This document shows, piece by piece, positions 13,056 through 63,700 of a stretch of DNA of 64,000 nucleotides; within the stretch, counting starts at the first letter, position 1; each line of letters opens with the position of its first letter. The DNA lies in NCBI GenBank assembly GCA_965202585.1, contig OZ241829.1, forward strand, positions 60,574,001-60,638,000. Reading direction: 5' to 3'. The notes below the pieces were generated by a model. That model was not told where the DNA came from. It ran no database searches and saw only the letters and a list, made by a program, of their open reading frames with translations. Position numbers and translations under genes: made by a program. The DNA comes from Thalia democratica (lineage: Eukaryota).

Positions 13056-13860
13056 ATGATAACAATGTAGCTTAAAATTAGTATTAATAAAGCACATTTT
13101 TTATTTAGTCTAAAATTTTAGCATTTTTATATGTTTTAACTAGTTAATTAAAGTTTTTATCACTCTTTGATTTATCTAGTTTTTACTATTTTATGCTTGT
13201 TTACTGGTGATGGTGTGTAAATTTTAATTGAATATGTTAACAGTGGGTACCGTTAATGTTTGTGTTTTTTGATTTTTTTATCCATTTGTTAACTTTTAAT
13301 CATATGTAGTTAATTTATTAGTTTATTTCTAAAGCTTTTATTTGATTATGCTGCATTTACTTATACTTGTTTAATTTAAGTCATTTCTAATTTATAAAAG
13401 CAATGAGTTCAAGTTTTTCAGTTTTAAAAAATTGTATGATAAATCACTTTTAAAAAAATCAAAACTTATCAAATTTTAAATATTTTTTAACCATTAAATA
13501 TACTTTAACGAAAAATTGTATTAAATTTATTTAAATTAAGACCTTTGCATAGCCGGAGGTTGCAAAAGAGCTATACTTCTAAGGTAAAAGGTAACAAATA
13601 TTTTTTAGGATTTTAAATATAAATTTTTTTTTAGACCAAAACTATAAATAACGTTTGGAATATTGTTAATATATTGAACTTTTACTATTATTTGTAAATA
13701 ATTGGTCAAAAAGAATATGATGCAGTATTAAACCTGAGTAACTTGATAATATTTAGTTTAAATTCCAGCTACATAATATAGTTCATGTTAATTAAAGAAC
13801 GTTTTAAATTAAACATTATACTGATATAGATATATATATTTATTTACTTATACAAAAACA

Positions 13861-13922
13861 ATAGATTAGACAGCTGTTTCGTACATGAAATATAAAACTT
13901 GATGTACTCCTCAGTAAGCTAG
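13861..13922 (-). ncRNA. Minimal type I hammerhead ribozyme, apparently intact
   Basis: - strand reads UAGCUUA, CUGAGGA, stem II GUACAU/AUGUAC, GAAA, palindromic stem III ACAGCUGU, GUC cleavage triplet (C at 13869), then UAAUCUA, which pairs 6 of 7 with the 5' strand of stem I. Confidence 0.85.
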
Positions 13923-14400
13923 CGAATTACATATGGAACTTAAAAGATAACAATACAGACTAAAAAATTAAATGGGAAATATTAAACAGGACAAAATTAA
14001 AATTTAATACTAAATTCGGCTGCAAACTTTGTAACTTAGAAAAAATAGAAATCGAAAAATTAGATAAGAACGTAACACTAAACAAGAAAAGCGAAAGACA
14101 AAACATATGCATCCATTATCAAAAATACTTTTTTAACAAAATTAAAACCAACTAAATATTAAAAAATCGACAAACACGAGTATTTTATAACATTTTTCCC
14201 AACAGTCTAAAAAAAAATTTCTAATAGCTCAGAACATTTTTCCAAAATAACCTTTATAAACTTTCCTAAAAAGCATAAAATAACATCACAGCGTATTATT
14301 TCAAATTCAGCTAATCGTACAATAAACACCATTACTACGTCACAATTATTATAAAAATTTTAAAATCGAAATTTCTGTTCACTATTATAATAAACTGTAA

Positions 14401-14454
14401 CTTACTGACGATCACATGAAATTTTACATTTCAATGTGTGAAACAGCTGTTTAA
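14401..14454 (+). ncRNA. Hammerhead ribozyme motif (second arm, slightly degenerate)
   Basis: CTTA, CTGACGA, stem II (T)CACAT/ATGTG(T), GAAA, CAGCTG, TT, TAA. The first pair of stem II is a T-T mismatch and the triplet is GUU. Confidence 0.65.
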
Positions 14455-15007
14455 ATTATAGTTTTTATATAATTAGATAAATATATATATTAACATATAA
14501 ATAATACGTATATAATATAAACGTATAATATACGTATTATTAATTAGTTCACTTTATTAGCTAAAAATAGAAGAAACCAGAACTATAAAACATATATAGT
14601 GAAAAACGTAGAATAAGCATTGTTAATTTTGTTGATTTCTACATATATATTATGTAATTATTAATACGTTAGTGTAGTAAAACATCTATAATAATTTAAA
14701 CACATTGATTAAAACGACTGTGTTCTGATTGTATAGATTGAAGCTGGTTAATTAAATTTTTTTTTTCAAAATAGTTCTTTTTTATCCTTGGTTTAAAAAA
14801 TATTTATAAATTCAACAGAAGCTTGTGTAAGAAAAGTCAATCCTATCATTACTTCATTTTGATAGCTTAAATTTGAAAATTACCTTATTTAATTAACTAA
14901 GAATTATGCTGATGAAGTATGGGAAAAAAATTACTAATTGAAACATATCTTTAAACTTAAGTTTTGGTACAAACTTCTAACCAATCCCTTTAACTATAAG
15001 ACATAAT

Positions 15008-15399
15008 TAGGGTTGCCACAAAGCCACCTGATATTCTGGAAAAGTCTAGAATTTGACAATTTAGGCAAAAAACCTGGAATTTTGATCAAAAATCCCTTAA
15101 AAACTTTAAATTTTAAACAATTTTTACATGTTAAGTAGTAAAGTTCTGATTTGACACGAAAAATCTATTATATAGATACAGTTTTCTAACTTAGGTATCA
15201 TATAAATAAAAAAAAATGTCATCATCAAAATTTGTTTTTATTAAAAAACACATTAATAGTAGTTTTAGAGTATCTTTTCAATGTTGTTATAATATTTAAT
15301 TTTATTTTACATTATACTTAATTTTAAACTAAAAACAGATCTAAAAAAGTGTCTTTTAAAAACCTGGAATAAATTTCTCAAAAACCATTGTCAACCCTG
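15008..15399. mobile_element. hAT-like MITE, family 1
   Basis: tagggttgccac ... tgtcaaccctg; TSD cataat/tataat (6 bp, one mismatch). Confidence 0.8.
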
Positions 15400-16059
15400 T
15401 ATAATATTTGTTTAAATAATGCTTAAATAGCAAACAAAAAAATTAATATTATGCTACGAAGTTTATGTTTAAACAGCTTTGTTAAACACTGATATATAAT
15501 TAATTTGGAATAAACAACCAATGTTTTCTCATACAAAAGGTTATATGACCCGCTTAATACATTAAATTGTCTTTAACATGTTTATAAATTTTAACTAGTT
15601 TAGTTTGAAAAAATTTTACTACTACTGATGGTAGTTTGCCTTTTTTATAAAAGAATCAGAAATATTGTGATAAGCTTAAAATTGGTTAAAGAACCCTTTA
15701 TTTCTTCTTATAAAACAGCTATTGAAATCTTCTAGTTCTATTGATTAAGCAGAATTAAAATGTTTATATAGACGAATGACCTCTTTAAAAGTTCTTTTGT
15801 TTTTAGATTTGAGGCAGTTTTTTTCAATGGTTTTTTATACAATTTTTGTTTTTAAATGTATTAAAATATAAAATTTCATTAGTTTTAAATAATAAGAACT
15901 GTGCCATATTGAAATCGAAATTTTTTTTAAACACTTAAAATATCTGTAGGCGTAAATTTTATTAGTTGTAGAAGTTTTTACTTAAAACTGTTTTTGAAGC
16001 ATATACAGTTATTTCAAGGTATAAAAATCAAAATGCTACTTTTAGTTATATACGTTTTA

Positions 16060-16296
16060 ATATCATATGTTTTGATTTTTAGAAATCAAATAAAGAGATT
16101 TCAACTACTAGAGGATAAATAATGAATTTATTCTTTCAGGACTTTATTTAACAAACTAAGTTTCGGCAAATAACCTCGTCAGTGCTTAAATAAGTCTTAT
16201 TCAAGAAGAATAATTCTATTTGAATAAGATTTATTTAAGCACTGACGAGGTCTTTGACCGAAACTTAGTTTGTAAAAAAAAAGTCTTGAAAGAATA
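16060..16296. mobile_element. Hammerhead-bearing fold-back element, family A (PLE terminal-repeat-derived)
   Basis: Arms of about 76 bp (16129-16204, 16220-16296). Cores: CTGACGA-GGTC-TTT-GACC-GAAA-CTTAG-TT on + (16242-16270) and CTGACGA-GGT-TATTT-GCC-GAAA-CTTAG-TT on -. A tail of ~100 bp is shared with the copies at 35.9 and 61.7 kb. Confidence 0.8.
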
Positions 16297-17964
16297 ACTT
16301 CAAGGTAGAGCAATTAGATCACGACAAGTCTAATTTAACCAGCTTGCCAAAAAATTTTTTAAAGAAGTACGATAACCTTTCAAATGAAATCCCTTTTATT
16401 GCAATGAGTATAGCGAGCATGAGAATAAAACATCAACATGTACTTTTGGTCTAATTACACTTTGGTTACAAAGATTATAACTAACCAACGAATTTTTTAT
16501 TTATGTACAATGAAAATTAATACTGTATATCAAATAAAACTTAAACTAGGATATTTAACTTTAATAACTTAGACTTTATATCAGTCTTTTACGTTGTTTA
16601 TAATAACTTTGCAATTAAGTTAAGCTTATATGGTTATTTTAGAAAACGTTTGAACTAATTGAGTAGGTACTTGAGTAATTCTATTAATTGTTTTTAAATC
16701 ATGTACTTGATAAAAAAAAATTAGTTGTCAAGTAAACCATTGTTATCTGTTTTAACAATTGTATACTCGAACAGATTTACTACTATAGACTACTAGCTTA
16801 TCAAGGTAGTAAACTTTGGACAAACCTACCTATTAAGTTAAATAACAAAAGCCATCTTGGAAGGTTCCAGGTTGAACTAAAGGAAAATTTATCAAATAGT
16901 CAACTAATTCAATAGAGTTTACATAAGATGAACAGAAAATTTTTATTTATTTAATCATTTACTAACATTAGATTAGTATTAATTTTTCATCTGAGTAGGT
17001 ATTTATATTTTTTTGAGTATATTAACTGGGCTCAATAGCATTGGTTCAGTCTAGATTGTAGAAAGTTGTAATGTATATATATATATATATACTTTTTTTT
17101 TCTGTTTGTAGTTTGTTAGTGTATTAGTAAACAATTTCATAGTCTACATTTTATCTGTGTAAATAAAATTATAAGTCTCTAAATATATTTTTGCCAGAAA
17201 ACAAAGAAAGATTAATATTTAAAACATGAGCTGAAATCATAATGAAATTTAAAACTAGTAATAGGTTGACATATTTTAGGGTTATTAGTGTTTTTTATCT
17301 TATTTATTTTATTATCAATGTATATGTTTTTTTTTAAGAAAAACTTATTTGTTATTTAAAGTGTATTTTTGCGGTTATTTCCATGATTCTTTAGGTATAA
17401 TTAAACTTCTATATTTAGACATTTATTCAAAATTGTAAAAACTAGTAGTTTTGATTAAAAGTATATATTTATTTTATACTTTTTATCTAGTTTAAGCAAT
17501 TTTTTTTTAATATTGCAGCTTTATTTTATGTATTTATTGTTTTTTTTTATGTTATAGCTTTAATTTATTTTTGCCTATTTTAAATAGGCTGTAATAAGTT
17601 GATAGTAGAGTCTAAATTCTTAAACATATTTTTTTTTAAATTCAAATGTATTTATTAAGTAACTTTTATTTTTTCTCTTTTAAATCATTTAAAAGGTTAA
17701 ATTATGCGCTAAAATTATTGATAAATTTTAAAATTAATAACACTTCAGATAGAAGCTATACCTTTAGACGTAGAGCTCAATATATATTTTATGTGTATAT
17801 AATGTTAGATACATGTGTGTATATAATTATTATTTTTTTGATTAATTTTTTTTTTAATATTTAATGTTATAAAGTTTAATAGTCTCATTTTAGATAGAGT
17901 TTTTCGTTTAAGAGTTTAAATTTTGACTGTAAAGATTTTTTATTTTTTTTAATTTGTAGCTCAT

Positions 17965-18080
17965 TATAATTTTGATTAAGTTGGGTTTGCAACTCGATGA
18001 CCGAGAGGTTTTTTGCATATCCAGGTCCTTGAACCAAAAAATGTTGAGCAATTTTTCGTTTTTGTTCAATAAACCACATA
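17965..18080 (+). repeat. Short interspersed repeat with a GA(C/T)(A/G)ACC-GAAA-GGT hairpin (LINE 3' end or SINE-like)
   Basis: Similar copies at ~11015-11060, 19065-19135 (opposite strand), 20965-21040 and 56718-56858; the last ends in an (AT)n tail. Confidence 0.6.
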
Positions 18081-19149
18081 ATATAAATAGTTTTAGCTGA
18101 TGTGTTTCGATTAAACTATTTTATTATAAAAATATTTGTTTTAACAAACTGGTTGAAACTTTTCTTATTGTCTGTTATGCTTTAATTTATCACAGCATAA
18201 AAATATACAAAAATATTTTTTACATACAGGAATCAGCAAACTACGGCACGTCAAACAGAAATGTTTGATTCTCGAATTGTTATTAGAGCAAATTTAGCTA
18301 CAAAAAAGTAGTTTTATTTGAAAAAGATTTTATAAAAAAAGCACTTAAATAGTTGTAAACATTCTATTATGCTATTTTGAAATTATTTGGGTATAGTTTG
18401 ATGGTAGAACAGTTTTATTTTATTTTTAAAATCAACTTTGAATAAATCTTAAACTGCGCCACCATCAATCCATGCGACGACTTGCTTTCAACAACAGCCT
18501 GTAATAGACTTTGTGTACTAATCTTAGCCCGTTACTTATTTATAACTCCCGAATCCTATTTTACAATAATAAAATCTTGTTTAAGTCTCAGATTTCTCTA
18601 ATAAACAAATAAATTTAAAATAATTCTAAGCCCTTCGTAATCTACTTCATTTCTAAATTAACTTAAAAATATGCTAAAAGCATATTGATACTAAAGACTT
18701 TGGATTTTTTCAGAAAAGTGATATCGTAACAAATGTTATTATTCTTTACATTATATTGTATAAATATATTAACCATAAACTACTTTAAGTCGATTATTTT
18801 TGTACTTTTGGCTTGTAAGATGTACACTTATAAACTGGTGTTTATTAACAAAACTTGCCATCATCATTTTTTTTTAATTTTTGGTTTAAGAATAAAAACT
18901 AATCAAAAGTTTAATAGATTTTATACGTGTTCGAAGAGTAATAGAATAATCTTAAATAATAAAAATATTAGTGTCTGTATGAAAATAAGGGTGTCAGAAT
19001 AAATTTAAATTATTAGTAACTTAAATATTATTAGTTTATTGAACGAAATAAAAATCGCTAAAAAAATTTGGTCCTAGGATTTGGTATACGAAAAAAACCT
19101 TTCGGTTATCGAGTCGCAAACCACTTGGATACCTTTTAACGTCTTATCC

Positions 19150-19522
19150 AGGACAAATACAATTAGCTGTCAAATTTGCACGAGGACAAAAAATTGCACA
19201 AAGACACTTTTCCACGAGCAGGTAATTTTACACATTTTTGCACGGATTGAATTCTTTTTATTTTACTTTTTTGTTAATTTTTTTTATTAGCTTTTATTTA
19301 TTTTATTTTACTCTCACTGTTACCCACAACCCTTACCCTCTGTCAGTAAATTTTTAATTGTTCTGTTCTTTTTTTTACTCTCGTGCAAAAATGACCCTCC
19401 GTGCAATTTTGTGCCCTCGTGCAAACTTGTCTTCATGCAAAAGTATCTTCGTGCAATTGTGTTTTTGTACAATTTAGTCCCCTCGTGCAGTTTTATCTTC
19501 GTGCATTTTTGACCTGTTCCCG
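19150..19522. mobile_element. MITE with subterminal (t)gcacgag/ctcgtgca repeats of ~20-bp period
   Basis: Repeats face inward from both ends; the right end ttttgacctgttcccg is complementary to the start cgggaacgtgtcaaa of the related copy at 43391. Confidence 0.65.
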
Positions 19523-25204: not shown

Positions 25205-28200
25205 CTGAACGTATATAAATTAGTCACTTAAAAAATACTTAGCCTTCTCATGCTAAGTTTCTATTTCTAGTTCTTTTTTATTTATTTGTATATATTATTG
25301 TTTTCCTGTTTTTTATTAATTGCAACCTGTATTTTTTTTTTTGATTCGAGTTCTTTTAAGTAACTTTCGTAGACAGTTTTAAAGCCTTAATACTATTTTA
25401 ACACATTTAGTCTTTTAACAAACTATAATGTGATGTTGGTTTTTAAATTATTTTCATTTTTAAATCAATTCATTTTAGTTTTAACTTAATATATATTTAA
25501 AATACAATTTCTAGGTGCCTTGCTCATCTTTATATAACCACGGTCTACAAAAAATAAATAGAAGTTGTTTTTCCATTTATTTAACATATTTAATTCTATA
25601 AAAAAAAGTTACTTATTTTTATTATTAACAAACTTTTGTTAATTTTTTTATAATTTTCTGTGTAAGAATGGTTTAGGGGTAATAAAATATTCTATAGTAG
25701 GTATGTTAAGTATATATTTTTAATGAATTCAACATGATATCTTATATAAAAACTTTAAAAGAATATTACAGCCAGTTTTTTATTAATTAAAAAAATCTAA
25801 TAAAGATTGAGATTTAGTTTTTTTAACAAAATTAAAAAACGTAATGACCGAGAATTTTCATGTTAATTTTTGGAAGTTAGACTGCTCATTTAAAACCTTT
25901 TCTTTCGTTATTTTAGCTATAGACCTCAAATTTTCAGTTAACCTTTATTTTTTAGTTAAAAAAATCTGTTTTTAATACTGATAAAAATTCTTCAAAAGTA
26001 AGGTTAAATTTTTAGTACCAGATTTATTGTTGAAGTTTGGAAAAGATTGGTTTTAAGAATGGAGGAGAAGAAATAATTTTGTGAAATAATCTCTTCTCGA
26101 GTTTTTGATACGCGCCTTTTATTTATTGATCTCACAGACTTTGATTGCTTAGAAATCAAAACCTACTTTGAAATTTGTTAAGCGTTTAATATTCTCCATT
26201 ATTTCCAGACATTTTTGCCTCCATTTTAAATTCAATGTTTTTTACTGGGCTTCAGGTTTAATTTCACACTTTTAATTTGATTATATGACAACTTGATTAC
26301 AAAAATCTGAAATATTATAAAAAAAATTCCATGATCCACATCTCAAAATGTAACTTATAGTTTAAAAAATAGAACCTACCAGAAGGTCTATAATAAAATA
26401 TGACAGAAAAAAAATTTAAAAAGAAATCTTTCAAAATAATTTATTCACATTAACTTAATTTAATTAGAAATTGAAAGGTTTGAAGTTGAATTGTAGTGCA
26501 CATGTCAATTTATTACTATTTACATTATAACCATATCTTTATTAACAGGAAAAATCTTAAATATAATATTAAAAATATATAACAGAACACATTTCATTTT
26601 AAATTTATTTAAGTACTTTCAAATAGGCCTCGTCAGAAATTGTTTCCTATTTAATTTGAATGAATACAAATTGAAATAAAATTATACTGAAGTTTAAAGT
26701 TTTAAGATATAAAATGACGTAATAATCAAAAGTTAAAATTAAGTAAGTGCTAATGTTAAACAAATTTGGTATACTAATAAAACTCGGTAGAACTAAAACA
26801 ATCTAAATAAAAAAGCGAAAAAATTTTTTAAATTAAAACTATGTTTAAAAATAAAGTTAAACAAGAAACTAATTACGTTAAAATTACTAATATAAGGATT
26901 TAAAAAGTCTAGTTTGGTAAACAAACTTTTTCTGCTTGCATAAACTGGGCTTTAAAGATTGAATACATAAAGCTTCCAGAATATGCAATTGGAAAGAGTT
27001 CTCCGCTCCCACTAAGACTGAAAAATTGTCCTTTTTATAATTTTTAACACACTCAGGATTGTCCAACAAATGCTGCCCAATCGCCGAGAAGTATTTTTTA
27101 GTTGGTTTCTCAGAACGGCCATCAAACCACTTTTTCAAAACTTTCGGAAAGTTTTGAGCATTTTTAAGCATAGTTTTAATTTAAAAAATTTTTTCGCTTT
27201 TTTATTTAGATTGTTTTAGTTCTACCGAGTTTTATTAGTATACCAAATTTGTTTAACATTAGCACTTACTTAATTTTAACTTTTGATTATTACGTCATTT
27301 TATATCTTAAAACTTTAAACTTCAGTATAATTTTATTTCAATTTGTATTCATTCAAATTCAATAGGAAACAATTTCTGACGAGGCCTATTTGAAAGTACT
27401 TAAATAAATTTAAAATGAAATGTGTTCTGTTATATATTTTTAGTAAGTTATGCACCGGAAAAAAGCTCTTCAAATATAATATTCTTTGAACATTTACCGT
27501 TTTTCTTTTGCAAATTGTCACGCTTCCTACTAAAACGCTTCGATCGGTCCTTTTGAACATCAGTAGATTCTCGCACAATCGTCTATTTTTAATAAAAAAA
27601 GATTATAAGTGAATCTGAAATATTTTTGTACAAGTAAAATTTACCCTTGGATTTTCAGAGACAAAATACTCATCTTTCGGAAATTTTCTTCGACTAAAAA
27701 TACTGTTCAAAATTTATCTTGTTTTAGTGTACAACTTCATTTAAATTACAACATTATTTTAGAAATATTTAACACTCAGTGTATTTAAGTATATTTTTAC
27801 CTTGGCGAATCATAACTACTCTCATAAAAATCTTCACTGTCAAACACTTCTCTTCTATTTGACCCGGTGCGCCACCTATCACTTTTGGAATGGGCACTCC
27901 ACCACTCCGATCTGCTTTCGTGGTAGTTGTGCTGTCAAAATCAATTTGAAGTTTTTACTTCGAGCTTTTTAATTGGTTAACATCAAGTTTTGCTATATAT
28001 AAATACTTTCAATTTTTAAGTATAACTATTGACAGTAGGAGATAACCTTTTTTTTACTTAGTTTTTATCAAACTTACAACAAATATGAACAAAACTAACT
28101 CTTCTATTACTGGTATCATTGAAGTGATGAAAAACATGATCATCAGAAGATCTATCACTACTCCTATTTCTCAAGCGAGGTGGAACAGAATATTGATTTT

Positions 28201-34200: not shown

Positions 34201-37200
34201 AAGGCTTTCATTTCGATTCTGTCCACACGCTCTTTTGTATTTGATATTCTCTCCAAATAATCTTCAAACGAACCATCAACGTCCTAAAACGTAAAACTTC
34301 TATTATAAATAGCTGCTTAAGATGACCTTAGAATTAAAATTTTATCAACAAAGCAATTGAAGTGAAAAAATAGAACTTAATGTTATTACCACACTTCAAA
34401 CTTAAAACCTAACCAGAAACTTTTTATGTTAATTAACATATTTAACTTATACATAACTTAACCTTAAGTTTTTAAACTGTAAGAGAGTTTTATTTAATAT
34501 AAAAATAATATTTCACTTCTGAAATAGTAACTTCAAAAAAACTGAAACTTTATCCTTGTTGATTTACAGAAAATTCTAAACCTATTATGTTTGTTTTATT
34601 TACTATTGAACTTGGATACCTTCATTTTAAAAGAAGATTGAAAGGTTTTAAAAGCCTCGAGAAGTTAAAACTTCAATAATATTTTTTTAATAATCTGTTT
34701 CTTTTTTCTTTAATATTTTAGATTAATTTTTTTTGAAGTGAGTTATTCCAACAGGTACTTAACGATTTCTTTTGAATGAAGAAAAATATTTCCAGTGATA
34801 CATTCTAATATGAACATAGTTTCAGTTAATTTATGTTATTTAAGCATATTAAAAAGTTCAAGAGAACTTATTATGTAACAAGTTTACAACTCAGTCATTT
34901 ATTTCTTAAAACTATCTTTAAGTATTAATTTTCCAATAAAATTAACTTTCAAACTGTCTTAACTTACTTCTACAAAATCCTTTTCATTCTTTCTAATAAA
35001 ACCAACACAAGCTTGTCGAATGCTTACATGATGGGATTGAGTTGAAAAAAGCTGAAAGTATATTTTAAATTATCTTAAGTTATTCACAAGCATTTATTGC
35101 TCATTCATAAAAAAAATTTCATTATACTGTTAACTTTAAAATAATTTACTATCATGAAGTACAAAGAAAAATCTATTAACTTAAACTAAATTAGGAACTT
35201 AGGTAACATAAGTTTTGTTTTAATTCGTTGTTTAACTAGGTTACATATTACTTTTTTAAAGAAAAATAATGTGTTATGTTTAAATTTTAAGTTTAAAAAA
35301 ATATTATAATTAATTAATAGCAAGAACGCATAATAGAGTTTTTTTTGAGTACTGTTGTTTTATGCAGTTTCTTAAAATTAACAATTAATTTCAAACAGTT
35401 AATGAAACACTTTATAAAACATAATTTTTAACTGAATTCGTTTTTAAAAACTGTTTTTTGGTAGATTTAGACTTTTTTTTGTAATTGATGCAATTATAAA
35501 TACAATCAAACATTCTTTCTATTTTGTATAGGAAACGTATTAGCTAAATAATCTACTGTGCTCATGTTTCTCAAGTTTAAAGATCACTGGTTTAAGTTAA
35601 TGTTTTATCTTTACTTTTTAAATTGCGGAATTTTTTGTTTATGTTAGTGTACTATCTTAATAAAGTATTTTAGACATATGTTTGATCACCAAGTTAGTTT
35701 TTTGACAGGAGTTAGTGAAAATTTTGAGGCTTTAAGACAAAAGTTCTACTGTAAAATTTATTTAACCTTTAACACTCAACTTTCCTTCTAAAATTTCCTA
35801 CACATGTTTTAAAAAATGAAAGCTTACGAATAATAAAATTATATTAAATATATTTAAATTTTGATGGATCATATTTAAAACATTTAACTCAACTTTATCA
35901 CCATATAAAATTTTTGTTACTAACAAATAGATATTTTATATGTTTAGATTTTTTGAAAACAAATGAAAAGATCTCAACTTCTAGATAAATAATATATTTT
36001 GTTCGTTCGACTTAGACTTAGTTATGGAATTTAATTTTCGGTCAAAGACCTTGTCAGTGCTTATATAAAATATTCATAAGGACTGACAAGGTCTTTGACC
36101 GAACTTTAGTTTTTGTATTTAAGTATACAAATGAATACAATATTACCAATTGTTCCACCACTAATAAAACAAAGTAAAACCCTATATACAGGGTTGCCAC
36201 TCGTTTTCCAATTTTTTTTTCAGGTTTTCCAAATTTTTTCCAGGTTTTAAAAAGTACACATTTTTGGGATTATTTGTAGCTTAAATCTAAGTTTAAGGTA
36301 AAAAACTGTGTTTATAGTAAAAAAACATAAAAAAGATACTGTAAAACTACTTTAAATATGTTTTTTAATAAAAAAAATTTTGATTATGATAAATTTTTTT
36401 TATTTAAATGATAGAATTTTTGAGTCAAATCAAAATTCTACTACTGAACATGTGAAAATTGTTTAAATTCAAGGTTTTTTTTGCCTAAATTGTCAAATTC
36501 AAGATTTTTTTAGGTTTTTCAAGGTTTCCAGGTTAAGTGGCAAGCCTGTATATACAAAAAGATTTCTAAATTTTATTTAGTACTTTTCAATGTACTGTAA
36601 AAACGTGAGTTAAGTAGTATTCAGGTATAGTAAGTCATTATTTTTTCTATTAACTATAAAGTAAGAAATGCTAAAAGAGATTTGGTCAATTTAAAATCAA
36701 CGTTTGCCTATTTTGAAGCTATAGTACAAATTATTTTAGTTTGATCTAAATATTGATTTAAATAAAACTTGTATGGACTTTTTTTTTCATCCTTTGAGTT
36801 TTTGATAAAATTTTTTGCTTATTTATTTTTAAGCATAAATATGCCAAGTTAATCATTTTTTAATTCAAATCAAAATTTTAGTAAAAATTTTAACTTTCTA
36901 GTCTAAACTTGAGTATATCTTAAATATTTCAAAAAAAATAAAAAACTTGTGTAGCAAGTATTTCATTATGTTAACTCATTTTATTATGTATTATATATTG
37001 ATAATTGAGCTAAAAAAATGAAATAAGTGTAATAAATTGCTTAAATGTGGTATAAATTAGTCTCAAAATTAGTCTCAAAATTTGTTATTATTATCATTAG
37101 CTAGTTTTAAATATTACATATTAAAACAAAATTAATATATTAAAAATAAAAGAGTCTTGTTTAAACTAAAGTTTTTGCTAAGGTTGTTCTTCATTTACTA

Positions 37201-46983: not shown

Positions 46984-49697
46984 TTCGAGTTTTTTTAAAT
47001 AGTTTTTCTACAATGATTTTTTTCTTAATATTTATTGTTTAATAGATGGTCAAATAATTTACTTTTTTCGGTAGTTACATTTTTAATGCGGAAATTTGAA
47101 ACTTATGTGTTGTGACGTTATATGGTTACATGAGATCGGTTTTTTGTTAGAGTTGTCCGTTGCCGAGATTAAATAAAAAACAAGACTAGTAAAAAGAAAA
47201 AAAAATCGTCTGGTATATAATTTTTTCAGCATACAGGTAATTATTAGGAAAAACAACTTAGCTACATTTAGTTAATTGAAAAAAAATTAGTTTTAACACA
47301 AAACAACTCAATATTATTAAGTTTTAAGATAAACCAAAAAAAAAACCATTTGCTATTAGTACTTAAATTAAACGATTAAACTTAAATAAGTTTTTTTTTT
47401 TATAAATTGCTTTTTTTAAAGAGGATTATTTTATTTTTATTAGAAATAACTCAACTGGTTATTTTAATCTATTCAATAAAACTAAATAATTATGAATTGC
47501 GTTTACTCTTGTTCATAACAAAAAAATAACTTTAATGTAAAAAACTTTAAAAAATAACTATATGTGTTATTTAAAAAAAAAAACTACTCAATTGTTGATT
47601 ATTGCACTAAAATGTTTCACACAGCGCGATGATTACTTACGAAGAAACATCTAACTGTAAGTGTATCTAATGTAAAGTTTATGAAAAGCATTTTATTTAT
47701 TGTTATTGTGACTTAAAATATTAAAATAATAATTTATAATTTTATTAACACTATGAATGAAATATTAAGTTATAGTTTTATGAGAAGAGTTTTAAATTAA
47801 ATTATCAATAAATGACCAAGTTATTTTAGATTAGTAAAACAGTAAAGAATGCGTGATATCAGAACTGTTTGCTAGACACCGTTACAAAAAATGATTTTTA
47901 ATAAGTTTTAAAATATCAACCATTTGCTTGATATACACTAAAATTAAATTAATTAATTTTGAACTATATTTCATAACAAACTTATCTTTTTGTAGACAAT
48001 GTTATAAGCTTAACTATCTTAAAAATATTTTAAGTTAAAAAGTATTTATTTCGTAAACACATAGGAAAAAATCTTTTTTTGAATAGCTTTTCAAACTAAA
48101 AAGTCAAAAAACTTGTAGAAAATTTGTTGCAATAATTGTAAGCTACTGCGAAATAAAAGTACAGCATAAACTACACTAAATATATATTAAAAAAAATTAT
48201 TACCGTTTTAATATTAGCACAGCTACAACATAGCGATAAAAATGTGTAAAGTCTAAACTCAAATGCATGCAAATTATCTTGTTTACTTGAAATATAAAAA
48301 CAATAGGTGTTTTTTGGGTTTGTGTTATCGTAAACAAAACAAAGAACTAAATATCTAAATAACGTGGCGATAGTTAAAATTTTTTGATATGCGACTAAGT
48401 TGTAGTACAAGTAATTTAGATAATTTAATTCTATGTAAAGTCAATACATTTTTGATTTTAATTAATATTTGTTAAACATAAAAATAAATTTTATGACACT
48501 TTAACAAATTGCAGTTCTACTTAAACAAAGTTTTCAGTTACCTTTACTTAACATAGTTAATAATTAAATAGGTATTATTTTCAGGTAGTGTTTAGTTTTT
48601 ATGCATGTTAATCATGCATTCAACTATTTATTGATAATAAAAAATATAAATTTACCTTATAAAACAAACTCGTTTGGCTTAAAATAAAACTATCTAGTTT
48701 TTTAAAGTTTTACACGTTTTACCTTTTAAGAAACCTAAAGCAAAAATAGATATTATCTTTGAAAAAAAAAAGTAATTTAAAATGTTTAACGAAAAAGAAC
48801 TACAGTACAACTATTTTATACTAACTGTAATATTTGTAAGTGATGTAGTATATAGTTTAAAGAAAGGTAACTAAGAGCCTCTTGTATGTTTAATATTAAA
48901 ACGGAGTGGTTTACTAAAACCATTTAATGGGTTACACAGCAATTTAAATTGTAAAAGTTCAAATTCCTTCAACTCAAACTCTAAGAAAAATGTTGTAGAA
49001 TAAAAATATTAAATATAAAAAGTGATGTGTACTTGAAAAAAGTTAAAAATCTATTGTAAATATAGTTACTTAGATATTGATGGTAAAAAACAATATATTG
49101 TAATTTATTTTCAATCAAACAGTTCAAAGTTCTCGACTTAATAAACTTTAAGGAATCTATTTATTATTTATTTTTACAGTTTATTATTAACAAAACAATG
49201 TTTTACTCCTATATTGGGATATAGGAGATCATCAGTTGTTATAAACAAGTCTGAAAAAAGTTTTTGAACAAAATAAATGGGAGTTATGTAAAAATATTAA
49301 ATAAAACAAAGTGAATTTATTGAGCTTATGGTTTAAAAACTTTTAGTTTAAGAACATTAACATAAAGTTGCAAAACAAAAAAAAATTTAATGGAAAACTT
49401 ATTAACTCCCAGAACGATAAAAATAAGTTGCAAAACTAGCTACAAAATTTAAAGAAAAAACACAAAACCTCTCAGGACGACAAAAAATATTAAAAATTGT
49501 TTAAAAGAACTGTTTTTTGAATTCAGAAAATTTCAGGAAAAGGTTGATAATTGAGAGAATTAACGTTACTAAAGTTTAAAATGTTTTTACATTATAATAA
49601 ATTAGTATATTTGGTTTAACTGTTTAAAAATTTAGGTTGAATCGTTTGCAAACAAACGATCCTAGTGAAATAACTTCGCAGGAATATAAATAAAAAG

Positions 49698-50412
49698 TAG
49701 TCTTCCTTTATTGTACCAACATATGTTTCTGTGTGTTAACGAATCAACACACTTCATTACAGATTTAAACTAAATCTGCTTCCTAATTGTATATAACTTT
49801 GATTTAATCATTACAAGCATTTAATATATAATACACATGTTACATCGAGTTTCTTTGACTTTTATTGTCTTCACCGTTGTTAAGTTTTATTAAATTTTAT
49901 TGATTCACTAACTAATGGTTGATGTTTTATTTTTGTTCAAAATAGATTACAAACATAAAAACTAAATTAACAAACTTTGCAATACAAATTAAATAGTTGA
50001 AATAACCTCATTTACATTGTGACGTAATTATTAGATGTAATGAATGTATTATGTTCATTCATTGACAACAGTAAAATTTTAATCAGTTATTCTTTCCATT
50101 AACGTGAGTGGTTTGTTTATATATGATTTGTTGTTTTGTTGTGTTATTTTAGTTTACTTTACTTATTTTAGATTTAATAGTTACAAATATTATATAGTTT
50201 TATAGCCGTCGGATTTAATTTCAAGTATTTTACCTATTATTAACTATTATCTGTAGAAACTATTTTATATTAATGAAAACATGTATACACCTACTTTATT
50301 CTATGCTTCTATTCTTTCATTACATTAATTATTTATTTACAGAACCCAGTTGAAGTGTGTTGATTTGTTAACACACAGAAACATATGTTGGTACAATAAA
50401 GAAAGATTACTG
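49698..50412. mobile_element. Fold-back element with degenerate hammerhead-like arms
   Basis: Arms of about 65 bp (49698-49762, 50341-50412): stem GTGTGTT/AACACAC, GAAA, palindromic ACATATGT, T, GGT pairing with upstream ACC, then AATAAA. The CUGANGA core is mutated. Confidence 0.55.
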
Positions 50413-50790
50413 TACAATTTGTTTTTATATATTTGTTTTAATAAATTCAAAATGTTTTTTTGAATATTTAAAAAAAAGTTTAAGATACTTTTTTTGAAAA
50501 ATATGGTTGAAATATAGTTCTTCTTATCTAAACTAACAACTTTATAAAATTTTGAATTAAGTTTTGTTATAAAATTAAGACTTAAATACCTTTTTTTTCA
50601 TTATAGCATAAAATAGCAATCAAAGTAAGCCTCAATAAGAATTTATTAGAAAACAGTTTTTAAACATTTAGTAGTCATTTTGAATTTTTTTCATAACTTA
50701 AGTATTTAAATTCTAACAAAAAAGCTATTAACTACCAGCTTACGCTAAACATTTTAAATTTAGGTGAACCTTTTCTCGTTGTCTTTACAG

Positions 50791-55635: not shown

Positions 55636-55763
55636 GTTACTGTAACAAATCCAGCCTGGTTAGAGTTGTTACATTCAGGGGTTATAGCTTTGCTTCTTTT
55701 TTTAGCAATACGTTTTGAGCGTTTAACTCTAAAACTATTTGAATCACTCGTAACAACTTTTAT
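55636..55763 (-). other. Candidate orphan exon
   Basis: AAAAG acceptor, open frame VTSDSNSFRVKRSKRIAKKRSKAITPECNNSNQAGFVTVT, GTATCT donor; locally raised GC. Confidence 0.35.

Positions 55764-56806: not shown

Positions 56807-56810
<4 letters not shown>

Positions 56811-56858
<48 letters not shown>
56811..56858. repeat. (AT)n microsatellite at the end of the hairpin repeat
   Basis: Pure AT run; shorter runs at ~9693, ~10467 and ~17074. Confidence 0.95.
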
Positions 56859-56860
<2 letters not shown>

Positions 56861-58219
56861 TAGTTATACTTAAGCTTAGACTTATAAAAAATTTAGGTTG
56901 TGTAAAAAAATAAAAACTAAACTTAAACTTAATTTTTCAGTTGTTTTAACAATCTAGTTGAGTACTCTAGCTGTGTGGTAGTTTTCTCGTAAAATTCTGG
57001 TAACTATGCTACACATTTTTTTTGTTTGTTTAAGTAATTTTACTTTTAAAATTTTTCAAAAATGATTTTTAACTTTATAAGCAGCTATAACTTTTTGCGT
57101 TTAAGGATTTTAAATGAGCTTTTACATAATAATTTTAATACTTTGATTTATGCAAACGATTTTCGATTTCATGTTATATTGGAAAAACAAAACATATAAT
57201 TAAATTAATTTTTTCCTCCTCATATTTTTATTAATTTTACTGCCGATTCTTAATAATCAATAAATTAATACTCTTTATCATAAAGAGTATTAACTTATTA
57301 GTTACTAAGAATAAAGAGTCTTTATGTGATGCCAATCTTATTTTGCGGTCTTAGCGTAAAGTACAATAAAACTATCTATGACGTCAAAGACAGCCATTAA
57401 GATTTTTTAGGTGAAAGAAGAGTTTATTTTGCACGAGTCTACTTTTAATACATGTCGTCACTTTTGCTTATAAATGTAGGGTCCTTTTAAAGTGCTTAAT
57501 TTGCATTTTTGGCTAGAAACAACTCTACATCTGGGAAATATCATAAAAACACTCTGTAAAACTTTTAGATGATTTTACAAAACGTAGATCAAGGCAAACA
57601 TTATTTTTTCTGCAGACAAGCCCAAAGAAAACTGTATGGGACTTTTGAAATTTGACCTTCAAGTTTTTGGCTCTAAGATTTTCTACATGTAGCAATTATT
57701 TCAACAAATTATTCTACAGAACTTTCGAAAAATTGAAAAAAACTTTTACAGAGTTTTTTTTTAATCATTTTGAAAATTTATCGTTAGTTTAAGTTTTTTT
57801 AATAAGAAGTGCCTTTATGAGACTTACTCCAAATTGTCTTAACTTCTTAAATCTGCAAAATGTGTTTTTGTGATAACTTTTACATGTAAAATCATATCGA
57901 GCCAAAAACTTTAAATTCGAACTTTATAAGTACCATACTCATACAGTCTATATTGTTTTTTTGAAAAAACTACGCCTTAATCTGCGTTTCTTCAAATCTT
58001 TCAAAATCTTTCACAAAGTGTTTTTGTGATATTTTCCAAATATCACAAGTATTAAATTATTTCCCCTTAGAAATTTTAAAGGTCGCTTTTTTTATAAGCA
58101 CCGTAAGGAGCAGTTACTTTTGCTAAATCAAATTTTATTATAATTTATTAAAAATATTTCATTGACTAAATTTTGTCTTTGTTTCACAAAAGTAAGTCAT
58201 GTAAAAATTACCCAGCGTG

Positions 58220-58505
58220 GAAAATTCACCACTAGTGCAAAATTGAACTCTAATGCAAAACAGTATCAATGCAAAATTTACATAATGCGTGAAAGTGACT
58301 CCGTGCAAAACTGACACCCATGCAAAAGTTATGATTCGTGAAAAAGTAACTACTCATGCAAAACTACTTCCGTACAAAACTGATTCCATTTGTAAAATTA
58401 ATTACTCCGTGAAAAATTGACAACTCATAGAAAGTTGACACTCGTGCAAAAGTGACGCCATGCAAAAGTGATTGTTCGTACAAAAATGACGATTCGTGCA
58501 AAACG
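58220..58505. repeat. Degenerate tandem repeat, period ~19-20 bp (cgtgcaaaa core), subterminal array of the gcacgag MITE family
   Basis: About 14 units of the form tgactc-gtgcaaaa; same core as at 19.4 and 43.4 kb. Confidence 0.7.
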
Positions 58506-60195
58506 TGATAAAAATAGGAAATCGAGATTTGTATTATGCTTAAAATTTTCATAAACCTTTTAGCTTTGGGAATTTTTTTTACAAAACCAAAACTAAAACT
58601 GATTAATTTAAAGAATTATTGACTTGAAAAATTAAAAAATATGTAAAAGCTCATACATTACTGTGGTCATTGAGCTTCTCACTATTAAGAATGTAAACAA
58701 TGTTTTAAGGTTAAATTTATAAAATGAAAACTAAAACATTTATTACAAACAAAAAAAATGTAGTTTTGAGTTTAAAATAGTAAACTTTGTTTTTAAAACC
58801 AGCTGCTGCCAGTTTTGACCATTAACTACACACAAATTCTGGTTAAATTTTTGTCTTAGTTCACCATTTACAATCATAATTTCTGCTGCTGGTTTTACAA
58901 AAACAACCATGAAAAATGCAACAATAATTATTAATAGATAAAATTAAAAAAAAATGGTTAATATTTATATAAGCACTCATAACTCAAGATACTATGAATT
59001 TTTTTTTTAAACTTATGACTCTAAATAGTTTTGTTAAAAAAAAAACTCAAAAAAGTTTTAAGATTTCAATAAATCTTAAGCTAGTTTTTTATAGATTTAA
59101 AAGAAATTTATTTGAATAAAGTTTAAGTTATTGATATCATTTTTTATTAGTATTATTATAATATTTAGTTATGTAGTTAAAACTTTTTCTTCTTACAATC
59201 TGTAGTTAAGTTATTTGTTTAACCTAGGCTAGTTTGAAGGATCTCAGACAGGCTTTTTTCTTCAAAGAGTGGCAACCCTGATTAAAGCAGATTCTCAGAT
59301 ACTTTTTAGTTCTATACTGTCATTTTGATAACCAATTTATTTTTTTCTTTTTCAACATCACTTTTTAATAATTCACTAAAACTGATTATGTCATTTAAAT
59401 AATAAAAGTTGATCACAATATTATTATAGTGCTGTTTCAGCTCTTTTTATACTTTACATTTTAGCTAAAATTAAAGTTGCATTTAAAGATTTATAAAAAA
59501 GGCTGCCACACACTCAGACTGCACAAGTCAGTTTAAAGTTTTCAAGAAACTCAGAAAAAATTTGATTTACATTTGCTTCTATATCTTTCCTATAAAAAAA
59601 TACACTTGTAAAATGTGTAAAACAAAAACAAAAACGTGTAAACTTTGCTGATGATAGCCAGATCTTGTTAATATAGAAGGTTTCCAAAAAACCTTGAAAC
59701 CTGAAATTTAAGAATTAGAAAATCCTTAAAGTTTTTAACAGTTTTTCCTGTGAAATAATGAAACTTTAAATAGATACAAAAATTTATAATTTTGTTTTTG
59801 TATCATTTAGAATTTTATTTGCTATAAATCTTATATAAAGGAGCTTTTCAGTATCTTTTTAATACTTTATTACACTTTAAGAAAGTTTCTCACATTGATT
59901 TCAATTTTTTATTAAAAATGGACAAAAAACTTGTACTTTTGAACGTCTGGATGAAATTCTAAAAACCTTGAAAAAAAAACTTTTGAAGCATAAACTGAAT
60001 AAAATTTTAGCTTGCATTTTTTTAAAACATTTACCTTATAATTCACTACCATTATAAATCAACCTTTCCTGGACTTTTGTTTTCAAATTCTTGACTAAAA
60101 AAATATTAGAAATCCTGAATTTAGAATAATATTTAATTAAATATAATATAAATTATTATTGCTTCATTAATTTGTTTAAAGGTCTTTCAATTTTT

Positions 60196-60582
60196 CAGGG
60201 TTGCTAAAAAACCTGAAAATTCTTGGAATTTGACAATGTAGATTAAAAATGTGGAATTTTAAAGATTTAGAAAAAAACTTTGAACTTTAAACAAAATCCA
60301 CTAAAAATACTAGAAAAACCTTGAATTTTTAAGAAATTTTATATTTAAAGTATTAAAGTTTCAATATAATAACAAAATCTAACACATAAAAAAAATTTTT
60401 TAAACTATAAATAAAGTAGTTTACAGTACTTTTTCAATGTTATTATACTATTTAAGACAGTTTTTTTTAACTTAAAATTTTATTTGATACTAAAAATATA
60501 CTAAAAAGCTTGTTCTTTAATAAACCAAGAAGAAACTTAAAAAACCATGAAAATATTTTCAAAAAAACTTTTGGCAAACCTT
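60196..60582. mobile_element. hAT-like MITE, family 1
   Basis: cagggttgcta ... tggcaaacctt; TSD attttt on both sides (6 bp). Confidence 0.75.
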
Positions 60583-61068
60583 ATTTTTGCATTTAATATT
60601 GTAAATATTATTTGTAAAACATTCAAATAGTTAGTTTAACAATTTTAAAGTAAAATTAAGATAAAGTTTTTCCCAATAATTCAGAATAGTTTAGAGATTA
60701 TTAAATATTTTTTATTAATTTTTAAAATGATAGTCTTGTAATCAATTATCTTTGTATAAAGCTAAATAAATGCTTTTGTTTTTAATATTTAGTTTTATGT
60801 GTTATTTTTACATATTTTGTTGCATAAATATATTGATATAAATTTATAAGCTTTAGTTTTTTTGAACTTGTCACAATGACTTAAGTATTCTTATGAAATA
60901 GTGACTTAGTGAAAGTTGTTAAGTATAATTTCTTGATTTAAAGTCTGTTTCCAAAATATTTATTTTTATAGATTTTTAGTATAACATTTTTTTTACTTAA
61001 CCTTTTTGCAACATAATATTTGATCAAAATATAGCTCAGCTTATAAATTAAGCTCAAGTAAAAACAAA

Positions 61069-61470
61069 ATGAAAAGGCGTAACAGAAATGCAGTTGAATC
61101 AATTTGTAAATACAACTTTGATAAAGTTGTAGAAGGTGCTATTCAAATTAACTTTTTAAAACTCTTAAAAAATAATGAGAAAGTTGCGTATGAATCCTTG
61201 ATGAAAACAATTTACAATAAAGTAGTTACAAAAAAAATGTTTCAAAGTAATTTGAGAGTTCTTAAGCGCTTTTGGGAAGCTAATAATGATTTTTTCATAT
61301 CAAAAATTATGGCATTAAAAGGTGAAAAGTTAGCTGAAGAACCTCAATCTGATAGAAGAAATTTCAAAAGTATGTTTAATGCATCAAAAACTGCAGAAAA
61401 TATTGAAAGTAATTTTGAAAACATTTTGAACAAAAGTCACTCAACATGCTCTAATTACAAGGTAGTATAA
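61069..61470 (+). CDS. Hypothetical protein, 133-aa orphan ORF
   Basis: ATG-initiated 402-bp ORF, long for this AT content, with a charged, helix-like composition. No motif recognised. Confidence 0.4.
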   Translation: MKRRNRNAVESICKYNFDKVVEGAIQINFLKLLKNNEKVAYESLMKTIYNKVVTKKMFQSNLRVLKRFWEANNDFFISKIMALKGEKLAEEPQSDRRNFKSMFNASKTAENIESNFENILNKSHSTCSNYKVV

Positions 61471-61540
61471 ATATTGTTTTATGTTTTGATTTTATAGTTA
61501 TTTTTCTTAACTAAAAAAGGTTGCTTAATTTACTGAAATG

Positions 61541-61660
61541 TTTTATTTTATTTACAACCAGGTTTTGGTAACAAAAAACTGCAACCTCTTGAAGTAAAAT
61601 AACTATTTTATTTTACTTGAAGAGGTGGCAATTTTTTGTCACCTTGTCGTAAATAAAATG
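61541..61660. mobile_element. Mini fold-back made of two degenerate hammerhead units
   Basis: + arm: TTTTAC, TTGAAGA, stem GGTGGCAA/TTGTCACC, GAAA deleted, GTC, GTAAATAAA. - arm: TTTTAC, TTCAAGA, GGTTGCAG/TTGTTACC, AAAA, CCTGG, TT, GTAAATAAA. Confidence 0.6.
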
Positions 61661-61674
61661 TTTAAATTGAACAT

Positions 61675-61805
61675 CTTTATGTTTTGATTTTAGAAAACAA
61701 AAAAAGAGATCTCAACTATTAGAGGAGAAATGATATATTTTATTTTTTTAAGACTTTATTATGCAAACTAAGTTTCAGTCAAAGACCTAGTCAGTGCTTA
61801 TATAA
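61675..61805 (-). ncRNA. Family A hammerhead motif (degenerate) and 3' tail, not folded back
   Basis: - strand: TAAGCA, CTGACTA, GGTC-TTT-GACT, GAAA, CTTAG, TT, TGCATAA; G8 is mutated to T. Confidence 0.6.
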
Positions 61806-62254
61806 AAAATCTAAAAATATATGTAACAGTCTTGGAAATGGTATTTCAACAATTGAACAAAAACTAATTTTTACTTAAACAACAAAAAAAGTCCTAAGGT
61901 TGAATTAATGTTTAAGTTTTAATTTTATTTAAGTTTAAAAAAAAAAGTAATAAGAACCTTGATGCAGGCTTCTCTTTTCTCTTCTAGTGAGTAATCAAAA
62001 TAAACATTGCTTAAATAAAAATGTAGATATAGAAGTAAAAGAGCTTAAAATTAAGGTACATTTTAATGTAGCTAGTTTTAATTGTGACATAACTATCGAA
62101 AATTTAAAGAAATATATGCTTGTAATAACTATGAAAATTTAAAATTTTGCTTGAATGCTTCATATAAAAACTTTTAAATGCAGAAAATAGTAGCTGCATA
62201 AAAAATTTTTTATAAGCATGCATAAAACTAGTATTACGGACAACTTAAGACTTA

Positions 62255-63700
62255 AGTTATGAAGTGAAGTTCTTTGAAGTGGGAGCAGTTCGTTTGTTAA
62301 AGTTATCTCTTCTGTTGGCATTGGCAATTGTTACTTTTTCTAGAATACAAGTACTGCAAATACTTTGTGGGTTTTTGCTTTGCCAATATGGTGGATTATT
62401 TCCCAGTCTATTTTGTAGTCAATGTTGTTATTTTTAAGTTTCCAGATGTATTTTGATATTTCTGTTTAGTTTTCTTTGTAGTTTTTTAAATCACTGATAT
62501 GGTTGTACCATCTTTTTTGAAAGTCCCACCCTTTGAGCCCAAATAGTTTTTTGTCTTCTGATCTGATTGTCGCTTTATATATGACATTTTCAACTAAGCA
62601 TTTTTTATATTGAGGGGACATTTATGTTTTTTTTGACACTTGCAAAGTGTTTTGCTTTCATCATTTTAAGTTTTTCTTTTTAAGCATTTACAAATTATCT
62701 TTTTGTATTAATTTCTTAATATTGCTCATGCAGCTTTATGATATTTTACAATTGTTCTTATTTATTATTTTGTTTAAATTGTAATCTTCTTGAAAATGTT
62801 TATCTGTTAGTAGTAGAAAAGCTTTACTTATACTGGTTCTTACCTACTGGCAGTAGGGTTGGTTGAAGTAGATTGTTTTTCTTGTTTGTGTTGGTTTCTT
62901 TTTGTTTTGATTGCTTTGGTGATTTGAGTATTTAAGTTTCTGTTTGAAATTAGAGTTAGTTGAAGCATTCTGGTATTAGGCTATTGATTCTTTGAAAATT
63001 CCTTTGGTTTTTAATAGTCTGTTGCGTCTTTTTTGATCATTTTTGTGAGGTTCTTTTTGATAATAGATGGATAGTTCAAGTAATTGTTAATAAAATTGAT
63101 GCTGGAGTTTTCTTTTTTGTATGATTTGAATGTGTTGTGAGTAGAATCTAGGGATATATCTAGGAAAGTTAGTTGCGACTACATCAATCATTATTTTAAA
63201 ACCGAGTTCATTAAAAGTTTTAATTGTGTTCTTTTTTAGTCTTTCTAGCTCTTGGTTACTTTTTCTGCCTATTATTGCAAGGCCTACATCCCTACAAAGT
63301 CAGATATCTTTATAGCTATATAAGTGCCTGACTTTCCTTTAGGCATACAGACCTGTCAGATTGCAAAGTTCCGCGCTAAAGAATGAAGCCATTTTTACAT
63401 CAAATTGGCTGTTACTGTCATTTTTAACCCAGGTTCTGTTATCATAAGTGACAATTGCTTTACATGTATGTTCTATTAACTTTATGTCTTTGTTTCTACT
63501 TCTGTGTAGTTTTTTTGTAAATTCTATGGCTTTAGATAGATGTTGATGACTGATGCTAGGATAAAAGTTGATAATATCAAAATTTACAAAACATTTATTA
63601 ATTATATTGTCAGTATTGCTGAACCATTCTAACACTTCATATAAGTTCTTCCATTGGGTTAAGTCCAATTTCCTTCTTATGTTATTAATTTTTTTCTATT
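62255..63700 (-). mobile_element. Decayed Penelope-like retroelement (RT and GIY-YIG), 5'-truncated
   Basis: LTQWKN..VLEWF...FVNFDIINFYPSIS...FDVKMASFFSAELCNLTGLY; the YRDDG motif has decayed to CRDVGLA; downstream FNQPYC, KISYSCMSNI, CPLN..ENVIYKATI and SKYIWKLK..IDWEI, with stops and frameshifts. Confidence 0.9.

Follow-up and report, generated by a model that had tools for sequence, protein, structure and literature searches.

A 64,000-nt stretch of the Thalia democratica genome (NCBI GenBank assembly GCA_965202585.1, contig OZ241829.1, positions 60,574,001–60,638,000, forward strand; hereafter, the window; G+C content, ~25%) contains inverted repeats in which sequences resembling minimal hammerhead ribozymes lie on opposite strands and point outward. 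An earlier note on this DNA had described at least six such loci as inverted duplications of the 3′ ends of Penelope-like elements (PLEs), and had suggested that a ribozyme joined to its own antisense might act as a switch. The question considered here is whether the paired hammerheads form a unit with a role of its own or are carried along by the manner in which the elements insert. Searches of the window and of the whole genome (802 Mb) make it probable that the loci arose when PLEs, and short non-coding elements with the same insertion signature, inserted by priming of reverse transcription from two nicks. With the exception of one locus (locus 1, discussed below), each is, judged from its sequence, a 5′-truncated copy joined head-to-head with a second, inverted 3′-end copy. 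Because the copies are joined in this way, their 3′ ends face outward, together with any hammerhead contained in the 3′ region or pseudo-long terminal repeat (pseudo-LTR). The paired hammerheads would then be passengers of insertion, and not a designed ribozyme/antisense unit.

A scan of the window for inverted repeats recovered six of the six loci named in the earlier note. The arms are 78% complementary at locus 1 (13815–13886 and 14434–14505), 87% at locus 2 (16143–16211 and 16213–16281), 99% over 286 nt at locus 3 (26567–26852 and 27160–27445), 79% at locus 4 (36013–36064 and 36076–36127), 95% at locus 5 (49696–49756 and 50351–50411) and 89% at locus 6 (61567–61602 and 61608–61643). The estimate of about five families was also right: family A is represented at 16.1 and 36.0 kb (loci 2 and 4) and by a single copy at 61.7 kb, and families B, C, D and E at loci 1, 3, 5 and 6, respectively.

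Orientation, duplications and tails of the inverted pairs

In an unbiased listing covering the first 4.5 Mb of contig C1, inverted hammerhead pairs of the same family separated by ≤5 kb were outward-facing in seven cases and inward-facing in one. A 29-mer of family A, which occurs at 2,162 sites genome-wide, gave seven outward and no inward pairs among its first 100 sites, and the inverted pairs of families B, C and D in the BLAST tables all had their 3′ ends outward. Since random juxtaposition would yield both orientations equally, the pairing is directional and not random. The expectation that inverted pairs would be commoner than random PLE fragments could account for was therefore borne out, the pairs being both frequent and fixed in orientation.

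Direct duplications of 6–17 bp bracket whole pairs. They measured 12–17 nt at eight family A fold-backs elsewhere in the genome, 6–11 nt at family C pairs other than that of the window and 13 nt at a 5-kb palindrome. Within a pair, the arms were 98.95–100% identical. By these features, both arms of a pair normally originate in a single integration. The inner junctions and truncation points vary between copies: family C pairs had arm lengths of 271–2,180 nt and junction microhomologies of 0–7 nt, the fillers and truncations differed among tight family A fold-backs (n = 115), and the central loops differed among family E fold-backs. Because of this variation, the pairs appear to be new at each insertion, and the short fold-backs are neither shrunken relics nor units copied as such. 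They are best described as head-to-head dimers of short elements, joined 5′ end to 5′ end and generated at integration. This description replaces the view that the loci at 16.1, 36.0 and 61.6 kb had shrunk to little more than a ribozyme and an anti-ribozyme.

Each family has one class of ends with a fixed stop and another class that extends further, by a tail of about 30 nt in family C, 57 nt in family A, 62 nt in family E, 65 nt in family B and 72 nt in family D. The family C tail corresponds to the first codons of the next open reading frame (ORF). Exactly one tailed end was present in 30 of the 30 inverted pairs examined (9 of family A, 4 of B, 7 of C plus 1 of a second autonomous family, 4 of D and 5 of E), an outcome with a probability of at most 0.5^30 if the two ends were independent. 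Of 12 asymmetric pairs, 9 had the tail on the shorter arm, among them loci 3 and 5 of the window. A rule placing the tail always on the shorter arm was rejected, as 9 against 3 is not significant.

In the mechanism that we propose, the reverse transcriptase (RT)–endonuclease of the element would nick the target on each strand, the nicks being offset by between a few and 17 bp. Both nicks would prime reverse transcription, at two neighboring internal start sites on the RNA, and the two complementary DNAs (cDNAs) would be joined in the middle by microhomology or filler. Priming from both nicks would yield outward 3′ ends, one duplication per pair and independent truncation points, and the use of two neighboring start sites would leave one end tailed and the other tail-less. 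A more specific proposal, which we regard as possible but doubtful, is that the two internal start sites of the PLE RT are used strictly complementarily in vivo, a coordinated and probably dimeric ribonucleoprotein copying one RNA from both nicks at once, with each protomer using one start site. If this were true, there would be a concrete and testable model for the inverted and tailed structures of PLEs, which have long been unexplained, and the kilobase-scale palindromes with loops of 9–12 nt described below would mark where two polymerases meet.

Families, coding capacity and anatomy of the loci

First-look candidates from genome searches numbered 1,124 for family A, 1,415 for family C, 3,203 for family D, 957 for family E, and 1,708 and 538 for the two subfamilies of family B, B1 and B2. 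Family C represents the 3′ terminus of an element that is autonomous, and one of its tandem copies (L033) carries an intact ORF of 834 amino acids (aa). The predicted protein matches RVT_1 (E = 1.2e-11), and its C-terminal 167 aa are 43% identical to the homologue P0053 (E = 3e-42), of which residues 575–613, within the aligned segment, match GIY-YIG (PF01541) with 27.5 bits against a cut-off of 22.6. A direct Pfam scan of the family C C-terminus gave no GIY-YIG match; this region shows the motif ...IIYKFSC..YVGKT..R...QH. There are 1,051 homologues with the same domain set, the nearest named one being from an octocoral. Because the order of an RT followed by a GIY-YIG domain is that of canonical PLEs (PMC8557442), the predicted protein identifies family C as a canonical PLE. 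The second autonomous family is 47% identical and has intact frames of ~840 aa, and at least 9,093 RT candidates were counted in the genome at first look. Tandem units of the pseudo-LTR type were found at L033 and L034, and inverted pairs at L010, L015, L016, L030, L031, L032, L034 and L064.

In the window, B1, C and D are present as 5′-truncated copies, and other copies reach further 5′; the idea that B1 and D are short discrete elements was rejected for this reason. The longer family A-type pairs (L059–L063) gave no RT match when inspected for an RT ORF, no systematic search for a partner having been made. It is mainly the one-sided tail that attributes the non-coding families (A, B, D and E) to PLE machinery. 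The claim that the loci are inverted 3′ ends of PLEs, or of PLE-dependent elements, from several families is supported. One-sided tails carry several of these elements past the coordinates first given for them (for example, 49617–49756, 16060–16127 and 61495–61545).

Locus 3 contains a long unit on the minus strand (26571–27166), a 5′-truncated family C PLE with the short end, which comprises the terminal part of the endonuclease-coding sequence together with the 3′ untranslated region. Its short arm (27160–27471, plus strand) ends in a tail of ~30 nt (at ~27442–27471) whose sequence is that of the first codons of the family C ORF. The two arms overlap by a 7-nt microhomology, and the pair is flanked by a 12-nt target-site duplication, AAATATAATATT, at 26559–26570 and 27472–27483. 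At locus 5, the short arm (49617–49756, minus strand) consists of 61 nt of shared 3′ end and a tail of ~72 nt, and the long unit (49763–50428, plus strand) is a 5′-truncated family D copy with the short end; a candidate duplication, TATATTTG, occupies 49606–49613 and 50428–50435.

Locus 2 is a family A fold-back, with a long arm on the minus strand (16060–16211; hammerhead, 16154–16182) bearing a one-sided tail of ~60 nt (16060–16127), and a tail-less short arm on the plus strand (16213–16297; hammerhead, 16242–16270). The only candidate duplication is a 9-nt match, TTCAAGGTA (16013 and 16299), located 38 nt beyond the consensus terminus; the ~38 nt between the end of the tail and this match (16022–16059) may belong to a tail of greater length or be transduced sequence, unless the match is fortuitous. 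Locus 4 (36013–36127) is an old, decayed family A-like fold-back and a mutated relative of locus 2, at which no target-site duplication was found.

Locus 6 is a family E fold-back (61495–61678) with its long arm on the minus strand, the tail at the left end, the short arm on the plus strand and decayed hammerhead cores. It is flanked by a 12–17-bp duplication (TTTATGTTTTGATTTTA) at 61478–61494 and 61676–61692. Next to it lies a single-arm family A copy (61679–61800, minus strand) with a decayed core (CUGACUAGG). The fold-back, with its duplication, landed within the terminal 14 nt of this copy, a case in which a PLE-type insertion struck the end of a further element of this sort. The window also holds a seventh locus that the earlier note had missed, an inverted repeat of ~1.5 kb (9331–9733 and 10446–10830). 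A hammerhead of a further family, F, is located at the outer end of its left arm (9095–9139, minus strand), and the homology of its right arm ends at ~10835 without a hammerhead.

Locus 1 is of a different kind. Its left arm (13837–13921, minus strand; hammerhead, 13869–13914) is a 5′-truncated 3′ fragment of subfamily B2, and its right unit (13919–14484, plus strand; hammerhead, 14405–14451, with a U/U left unpaired at the base of helix II) is a 5′-truncated copy of subfamily B1. Both have the short, tail-less end. The left arm is 90–97% identical to other B2 copies and only ~80% identical to its partner, and the right unit is 91–94% identical to other B1 copies. A tail is present at neither end, and no target-site duplication was found in the flanks, which consist on both sides of (AT)n only. 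Locus 1 had been presented as an inverted duplication; the assignment of its arms indicates a junction of two subfamilies instead. An older B2 copy split by the B1 unit was considered and rejected, as the flanks lack homology. The origin of locus 1 probably differs from that of the other pairs and would have involved either two events or two RNAs in one event.

Hammerhead motifs

A structural descriptor (CUGANGA, helix II of ≥3 bp, GAAA, a short closed helix III and UH) detected five complete motifs in the window, compared with 0.22 expected from 300 composition-matched simulations (maximum, 2). These are the four hammerheads of loci 1 and 2 and that of family F, a minimal type I motif whose helices I and II comprise 5 and 9 bp, respectively, and whose helix III reads GAAAC-AUAU-GUU. 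Genome-wide, the pattern CTGANGA-N6-30-GAAAC-N2-6-GTH had 16,811 matches versus 1,124 for its reversed control (15-fold). The matches belong to many families, the helix II sequences of which differ between families and are complementary within them. Helix III strings are mostly palindromic throughout the genome (ACCGGU, ACUCGAGU, ACAGCUGU and ACAUAUGU), and those quoted for the window in the earlier note are present in its sequence. By these measures the hammerhead motifs are real and very abundant in this genome. Arrays of a hammerhead-like string (CTGATGAGAGTTCAGATGAAACGAGT) with 27-nt spacing occur at G000:C1:1631774-1635566 and 1371907-1373258, where they form a satellite with a minimal hammerhead-like unit.

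The Rfam hammerhead models, which had been suggested as a check, did not reach threshold. Across the whole window they gave no match at the gathering score or at E ≤ 10, and in a 181-nt slice the best scores were 16.1 bits for Hammerhead_3 (gathering score, 48.5) and 14 bits for the RAGATH-1 hammerhead (56.3). On the palindromes, searches of the whole window and of two slices returned only weak noise from microRNA models. A relaxed descriptor was likewise needed for the minimal hammerheads of PLEs described previously (PMC4209133).

Outward-pointing hammerheads on both strands had been claimed for all six loci. The claim holds for loci 1 and 2 (13.8–14.5 and 16.1–16.3 kb), where complete motifs occur on both outward strands, but not for loci 3 to 6, the cores of which are decayed or non-canonical and fail the descriptor. 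Locus 3 (26.6/27.4 kb) carries CUGACGA and GAAAGUACUU boxes, at 26592–26636 in its long unit, and helix II is absent in 25 of 25 copies. At locus 4 (36.0 kb), the cores have mutated to CUGACAA and GAAC. Locus 5 (49.7/50.4 kb) has CAGUUGA in place of CUGANGA, with UAAUGAA on its left arm, and the family D core was non-canonical in all 12 ends inspected. Locus 6 (61.5 kb) is a decayed relic; better family E copies read (C/U)UGA(A/G)GA ... GAAAC-CUGG-UU.

Among the autonomous elements, family C has hammerhead core boxes ~40 nt upstream of the start codon, without helix II, and the second autonomous family (L064) has no CUGANGA. The youngest families with intact ORFs (L033 and L010–L019; L064) thus lack a canonical hammerhead, and complete motifs persist in A, B and F, which are short and non-coding. 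Elsewhere in the window, a weak SNORD57-like match (6619–6686, plus strand; 30.1 bits against a threshold of 47) includes two CUGA-containing boxes.

Origin of the pairs and comparison with known systems

The suggestion that the pairs are selected units, either a ribozyme with an antisense lock serving as a cleavage or double-stranded RNA switch or a dedicated minimal non-autonomous fold-back class, is very unlikely. Short fold-backs are indeed numerous, as the tight family A pairs and the first-look family E candidates demonstrate, and their RNA would form a very stable hairpin: the 139-nt palindrome of family A folds at a predicted −79.7 kcal/mol, versus −6.7 kcal/mol for the hammerhead alone. 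Because the former value swamps the latter, however, a read-through RNA would be expected to be locked as a hairpin that outcompetes the hammerhead. Nothing indicates that the paired form is under selection. Junctions vary, as do fillers and arm lengths, which means that the fold-back is not passed on as one piece; only ~10% of family A hammerhead copies (230 of 2,162) are in tight pairs, and the cores decay freely at 36.0, 61.5 and 61.7 kb. In addition, PLEs can insert in vitro without hammerhead cleavage (PMC11167929). Contigs resembling the families do occur in RNA libraries, the public runs that hold the stretch being marine metatranscriptomes (as contigs) and a fish-gut metagenome. The metatranscriptome contigs cover only repeats (13919–14518, 14974–15428 and 16066–16338), show neither ends nor strand nor real transcription, and could derive from DNA carry-over or from other copies. 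The second of these regions, 14974–15428, is another interspersed repeat that is abundant in the metatranscriptome contigs and ~70–80% similar to sequence in several loci. Even less credible is a reading of the loci as miniature inverted-repeat DNA transposons or foldback elements whose resemblance to hammerheads is accidental. Such elements would likewise have inverted repeats at their termini, duplications at their flanks and many copies, but family C encodes an RT–endonuclease, arm lengths and inner junctions vary between copies, the duplications are not of fixed length (6 to 17 bp), the tail is one-sided, and the hammerhead pattern exceeds its control 15-fold.

Two further explanations concern the manner of insertion, and the orientation of the pairs does not separate the first of them from two-nick priming. 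In fold-back (snap-back) priming, a single first-strand cDNA folds back and the RT copies the second arm from it, which likewise predicts outward ends. Near-perfect palindromes of 3.7 kb (L030, G000:C10:37760500-37766500; 9-nt loop) and 5.0 kb (L064, G000:C10:34215300-34220900; 12-nt loop and 13-bp duplication) resemble products of such a reaction. Each consists of two PLE copies truncated within 9–12 nt of each other, is 99.7% self-complementary and carries one tail. The 99–100% identity of arms within pairs and the short junction microhomologies point in the same direction, as does the sharing of the subfamily base at core position 7 by the arms of tight family A pairs (~2 of ~50 listed pairs are mixed). 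An arm copied from another cannot hold a tail that the first lacks, however, and the tail is found on the shorter arm in most asymmetric pairs; moreover, copying to the end of the cDNA predicts either a tail at both ends or flanking sequence repeated in inverse orientation, whereas one tail and a direct duplication were seen in 30 of 30, and the arms of locus 1 are heterologous. Fold-back priming, which the earlier note had put forward as a possibility, is therefore unlikely as the general cause. Improbable too, and somewhat more so, are independent insertions beside or inside older copies, guided by an endonuclease that favors PLE sequence or (TA)n microsatellites. Targeting biased toward PLEs or AT-rich DNA has been published (PMC11167929, PMC8557442), the family E fold-back lies within the final 14 nt of its family A neighbor, and the arms of locus 1 come from two subfamilies, are tail-less and are flanked by (AT)n. 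Independent insertions predict both orientations, separate duplications and independent tails, but the pairs are almost all outward, with one duplication and one tail.

Several points weigh against two-nick priming or against its extension to all families. The symmetry of L030 and L064 is not obviously expected of two independent cDNAs, and a hairpin-type template switch fits it better. The one-tail rule requires an extra assumption of coordination, because the start sites showed no strand preference in vitro (PMC11167929). Only two families, C and one other, are linked to an RT ORF, the assignment of A, B, D and E to PLE machinery resting solely on the signatures of tail, duplication and hammerhead, and the hammerhead-like boxes of family C lack helix II. 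Finally, the sets of pairs came from BLAST queries that held both arms, which biases the pairing frequencies but should not bias orientation or tail counts. On balance, we infer that priming from both strands ranks first, and that snap-back may be a minority or partial contributor.

The head-to-head architecture of PLEs is already published (PMC8557442, PMC4209133, PMC11167929) and is common in this genome. To this, the present loci add the strict one-tail rule, the heterologous pair of locus 1, the symmetric kilobase-scale palindromes and autonomous families without a canonical hammerhead. For annotation, these loci and thousands alike should be masked as PLE or PLE-dependent repeats, and not entered as ribozyme genes, microRNA hairpins or regulatory switches. 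The genome, in which many young families retain clean duplications, tails and junctions, preserves abundant natural evidence of how PLEs integrate. The one-tail rule, the locus 1 pair and the palindromes constrain models of a largely unexplained retrotransposition mechanism, and the absence of a canonical hammerhead from autonomous families whose short dependants keep one bears on the purpose of PLE hammerheads.

An inverted 5′-truncated copy, a tail and hammerheads in pseudo-LTRs have been described in PLEs (PMC8557442), and pairs of minimal hammerheads on opposite strands, 100–700 bp apart, with an unpaired base adjoining helix II, were reported by Cervera and de la Peña in 2014 (PMC4209133); the background on which the earlier note relied, that PLEs carry minimal hammerheads and inverted repeats, is thus correct. 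The elements of this genome resemble the PLEs of PMC8557442 in the order of RT and C-terminal GIY-YIG, the partial tandems, the inverted 5′-truncated copy at the 5′ end, the one-sided tail, the duplications of variable length, the AT-rich or microsatellite targets and the location of hammerheads in the 3′ or pseudo-LTR region. They differ in that the tails of the short families are ~57–72 nt long, as opposed to 30–40 nt, and in that two autonomous families lack a canonical hammerhead. Like the minimal hammerheads of PMC4209133, those found here are of type I. Helix II is long, adjoins an unpaired base and covaries between families, helix III has 1–2 bp and a palindromic loop, and the motifs occur in opposite-strand pairs and in massive copy number. 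In contrast to the published hammerheads, those of this genome are predicted motifs, and several copies in the window have mutated cores.

The purified Poseidon protein of Anolis cleaves and extends both target strands, uses two adjacent internal RT start sites the spacing of which equals the tail, shows no strand preference in vitro and still inserts RNAs with a mutated hammerhead (Frangieh et al. 2024; PMC11167929). Extension on both strands, two adjacent start sites spaced as the tail and a dispensable hammerhead are likewise features of the reading preferred here, that is, two-nick priming; in contrast to the lack of strand preference in vitro, every inverted pair that we examined has one of each end. 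The short families also recall the non-LTR retrozymes of animals, which are short, non-coding, PLE-dependent hammerhead repeats (Cervera and de la Peña 2020; Li et al. 2026, preprint, doi 10.64898/2026.07.22.740005). Retrozymes, however, are same-strand tandems that can release monomers or circles, whereas the motifs described here lie on opposite strands and no unit is excised; no same-strand family A pair was found within 5 kb among 100 listed sites. In the twin priming of human L1, reportedly described by Ostertag and Kazazian in 2001, both target strands are said to prime reverse transcription, which leaves an inverted 5′ segment. In L1, the inverted segment is a separate, contiguous stretch of a single RNA, whereas both arms of the pairs described here represent the same 3′ region.

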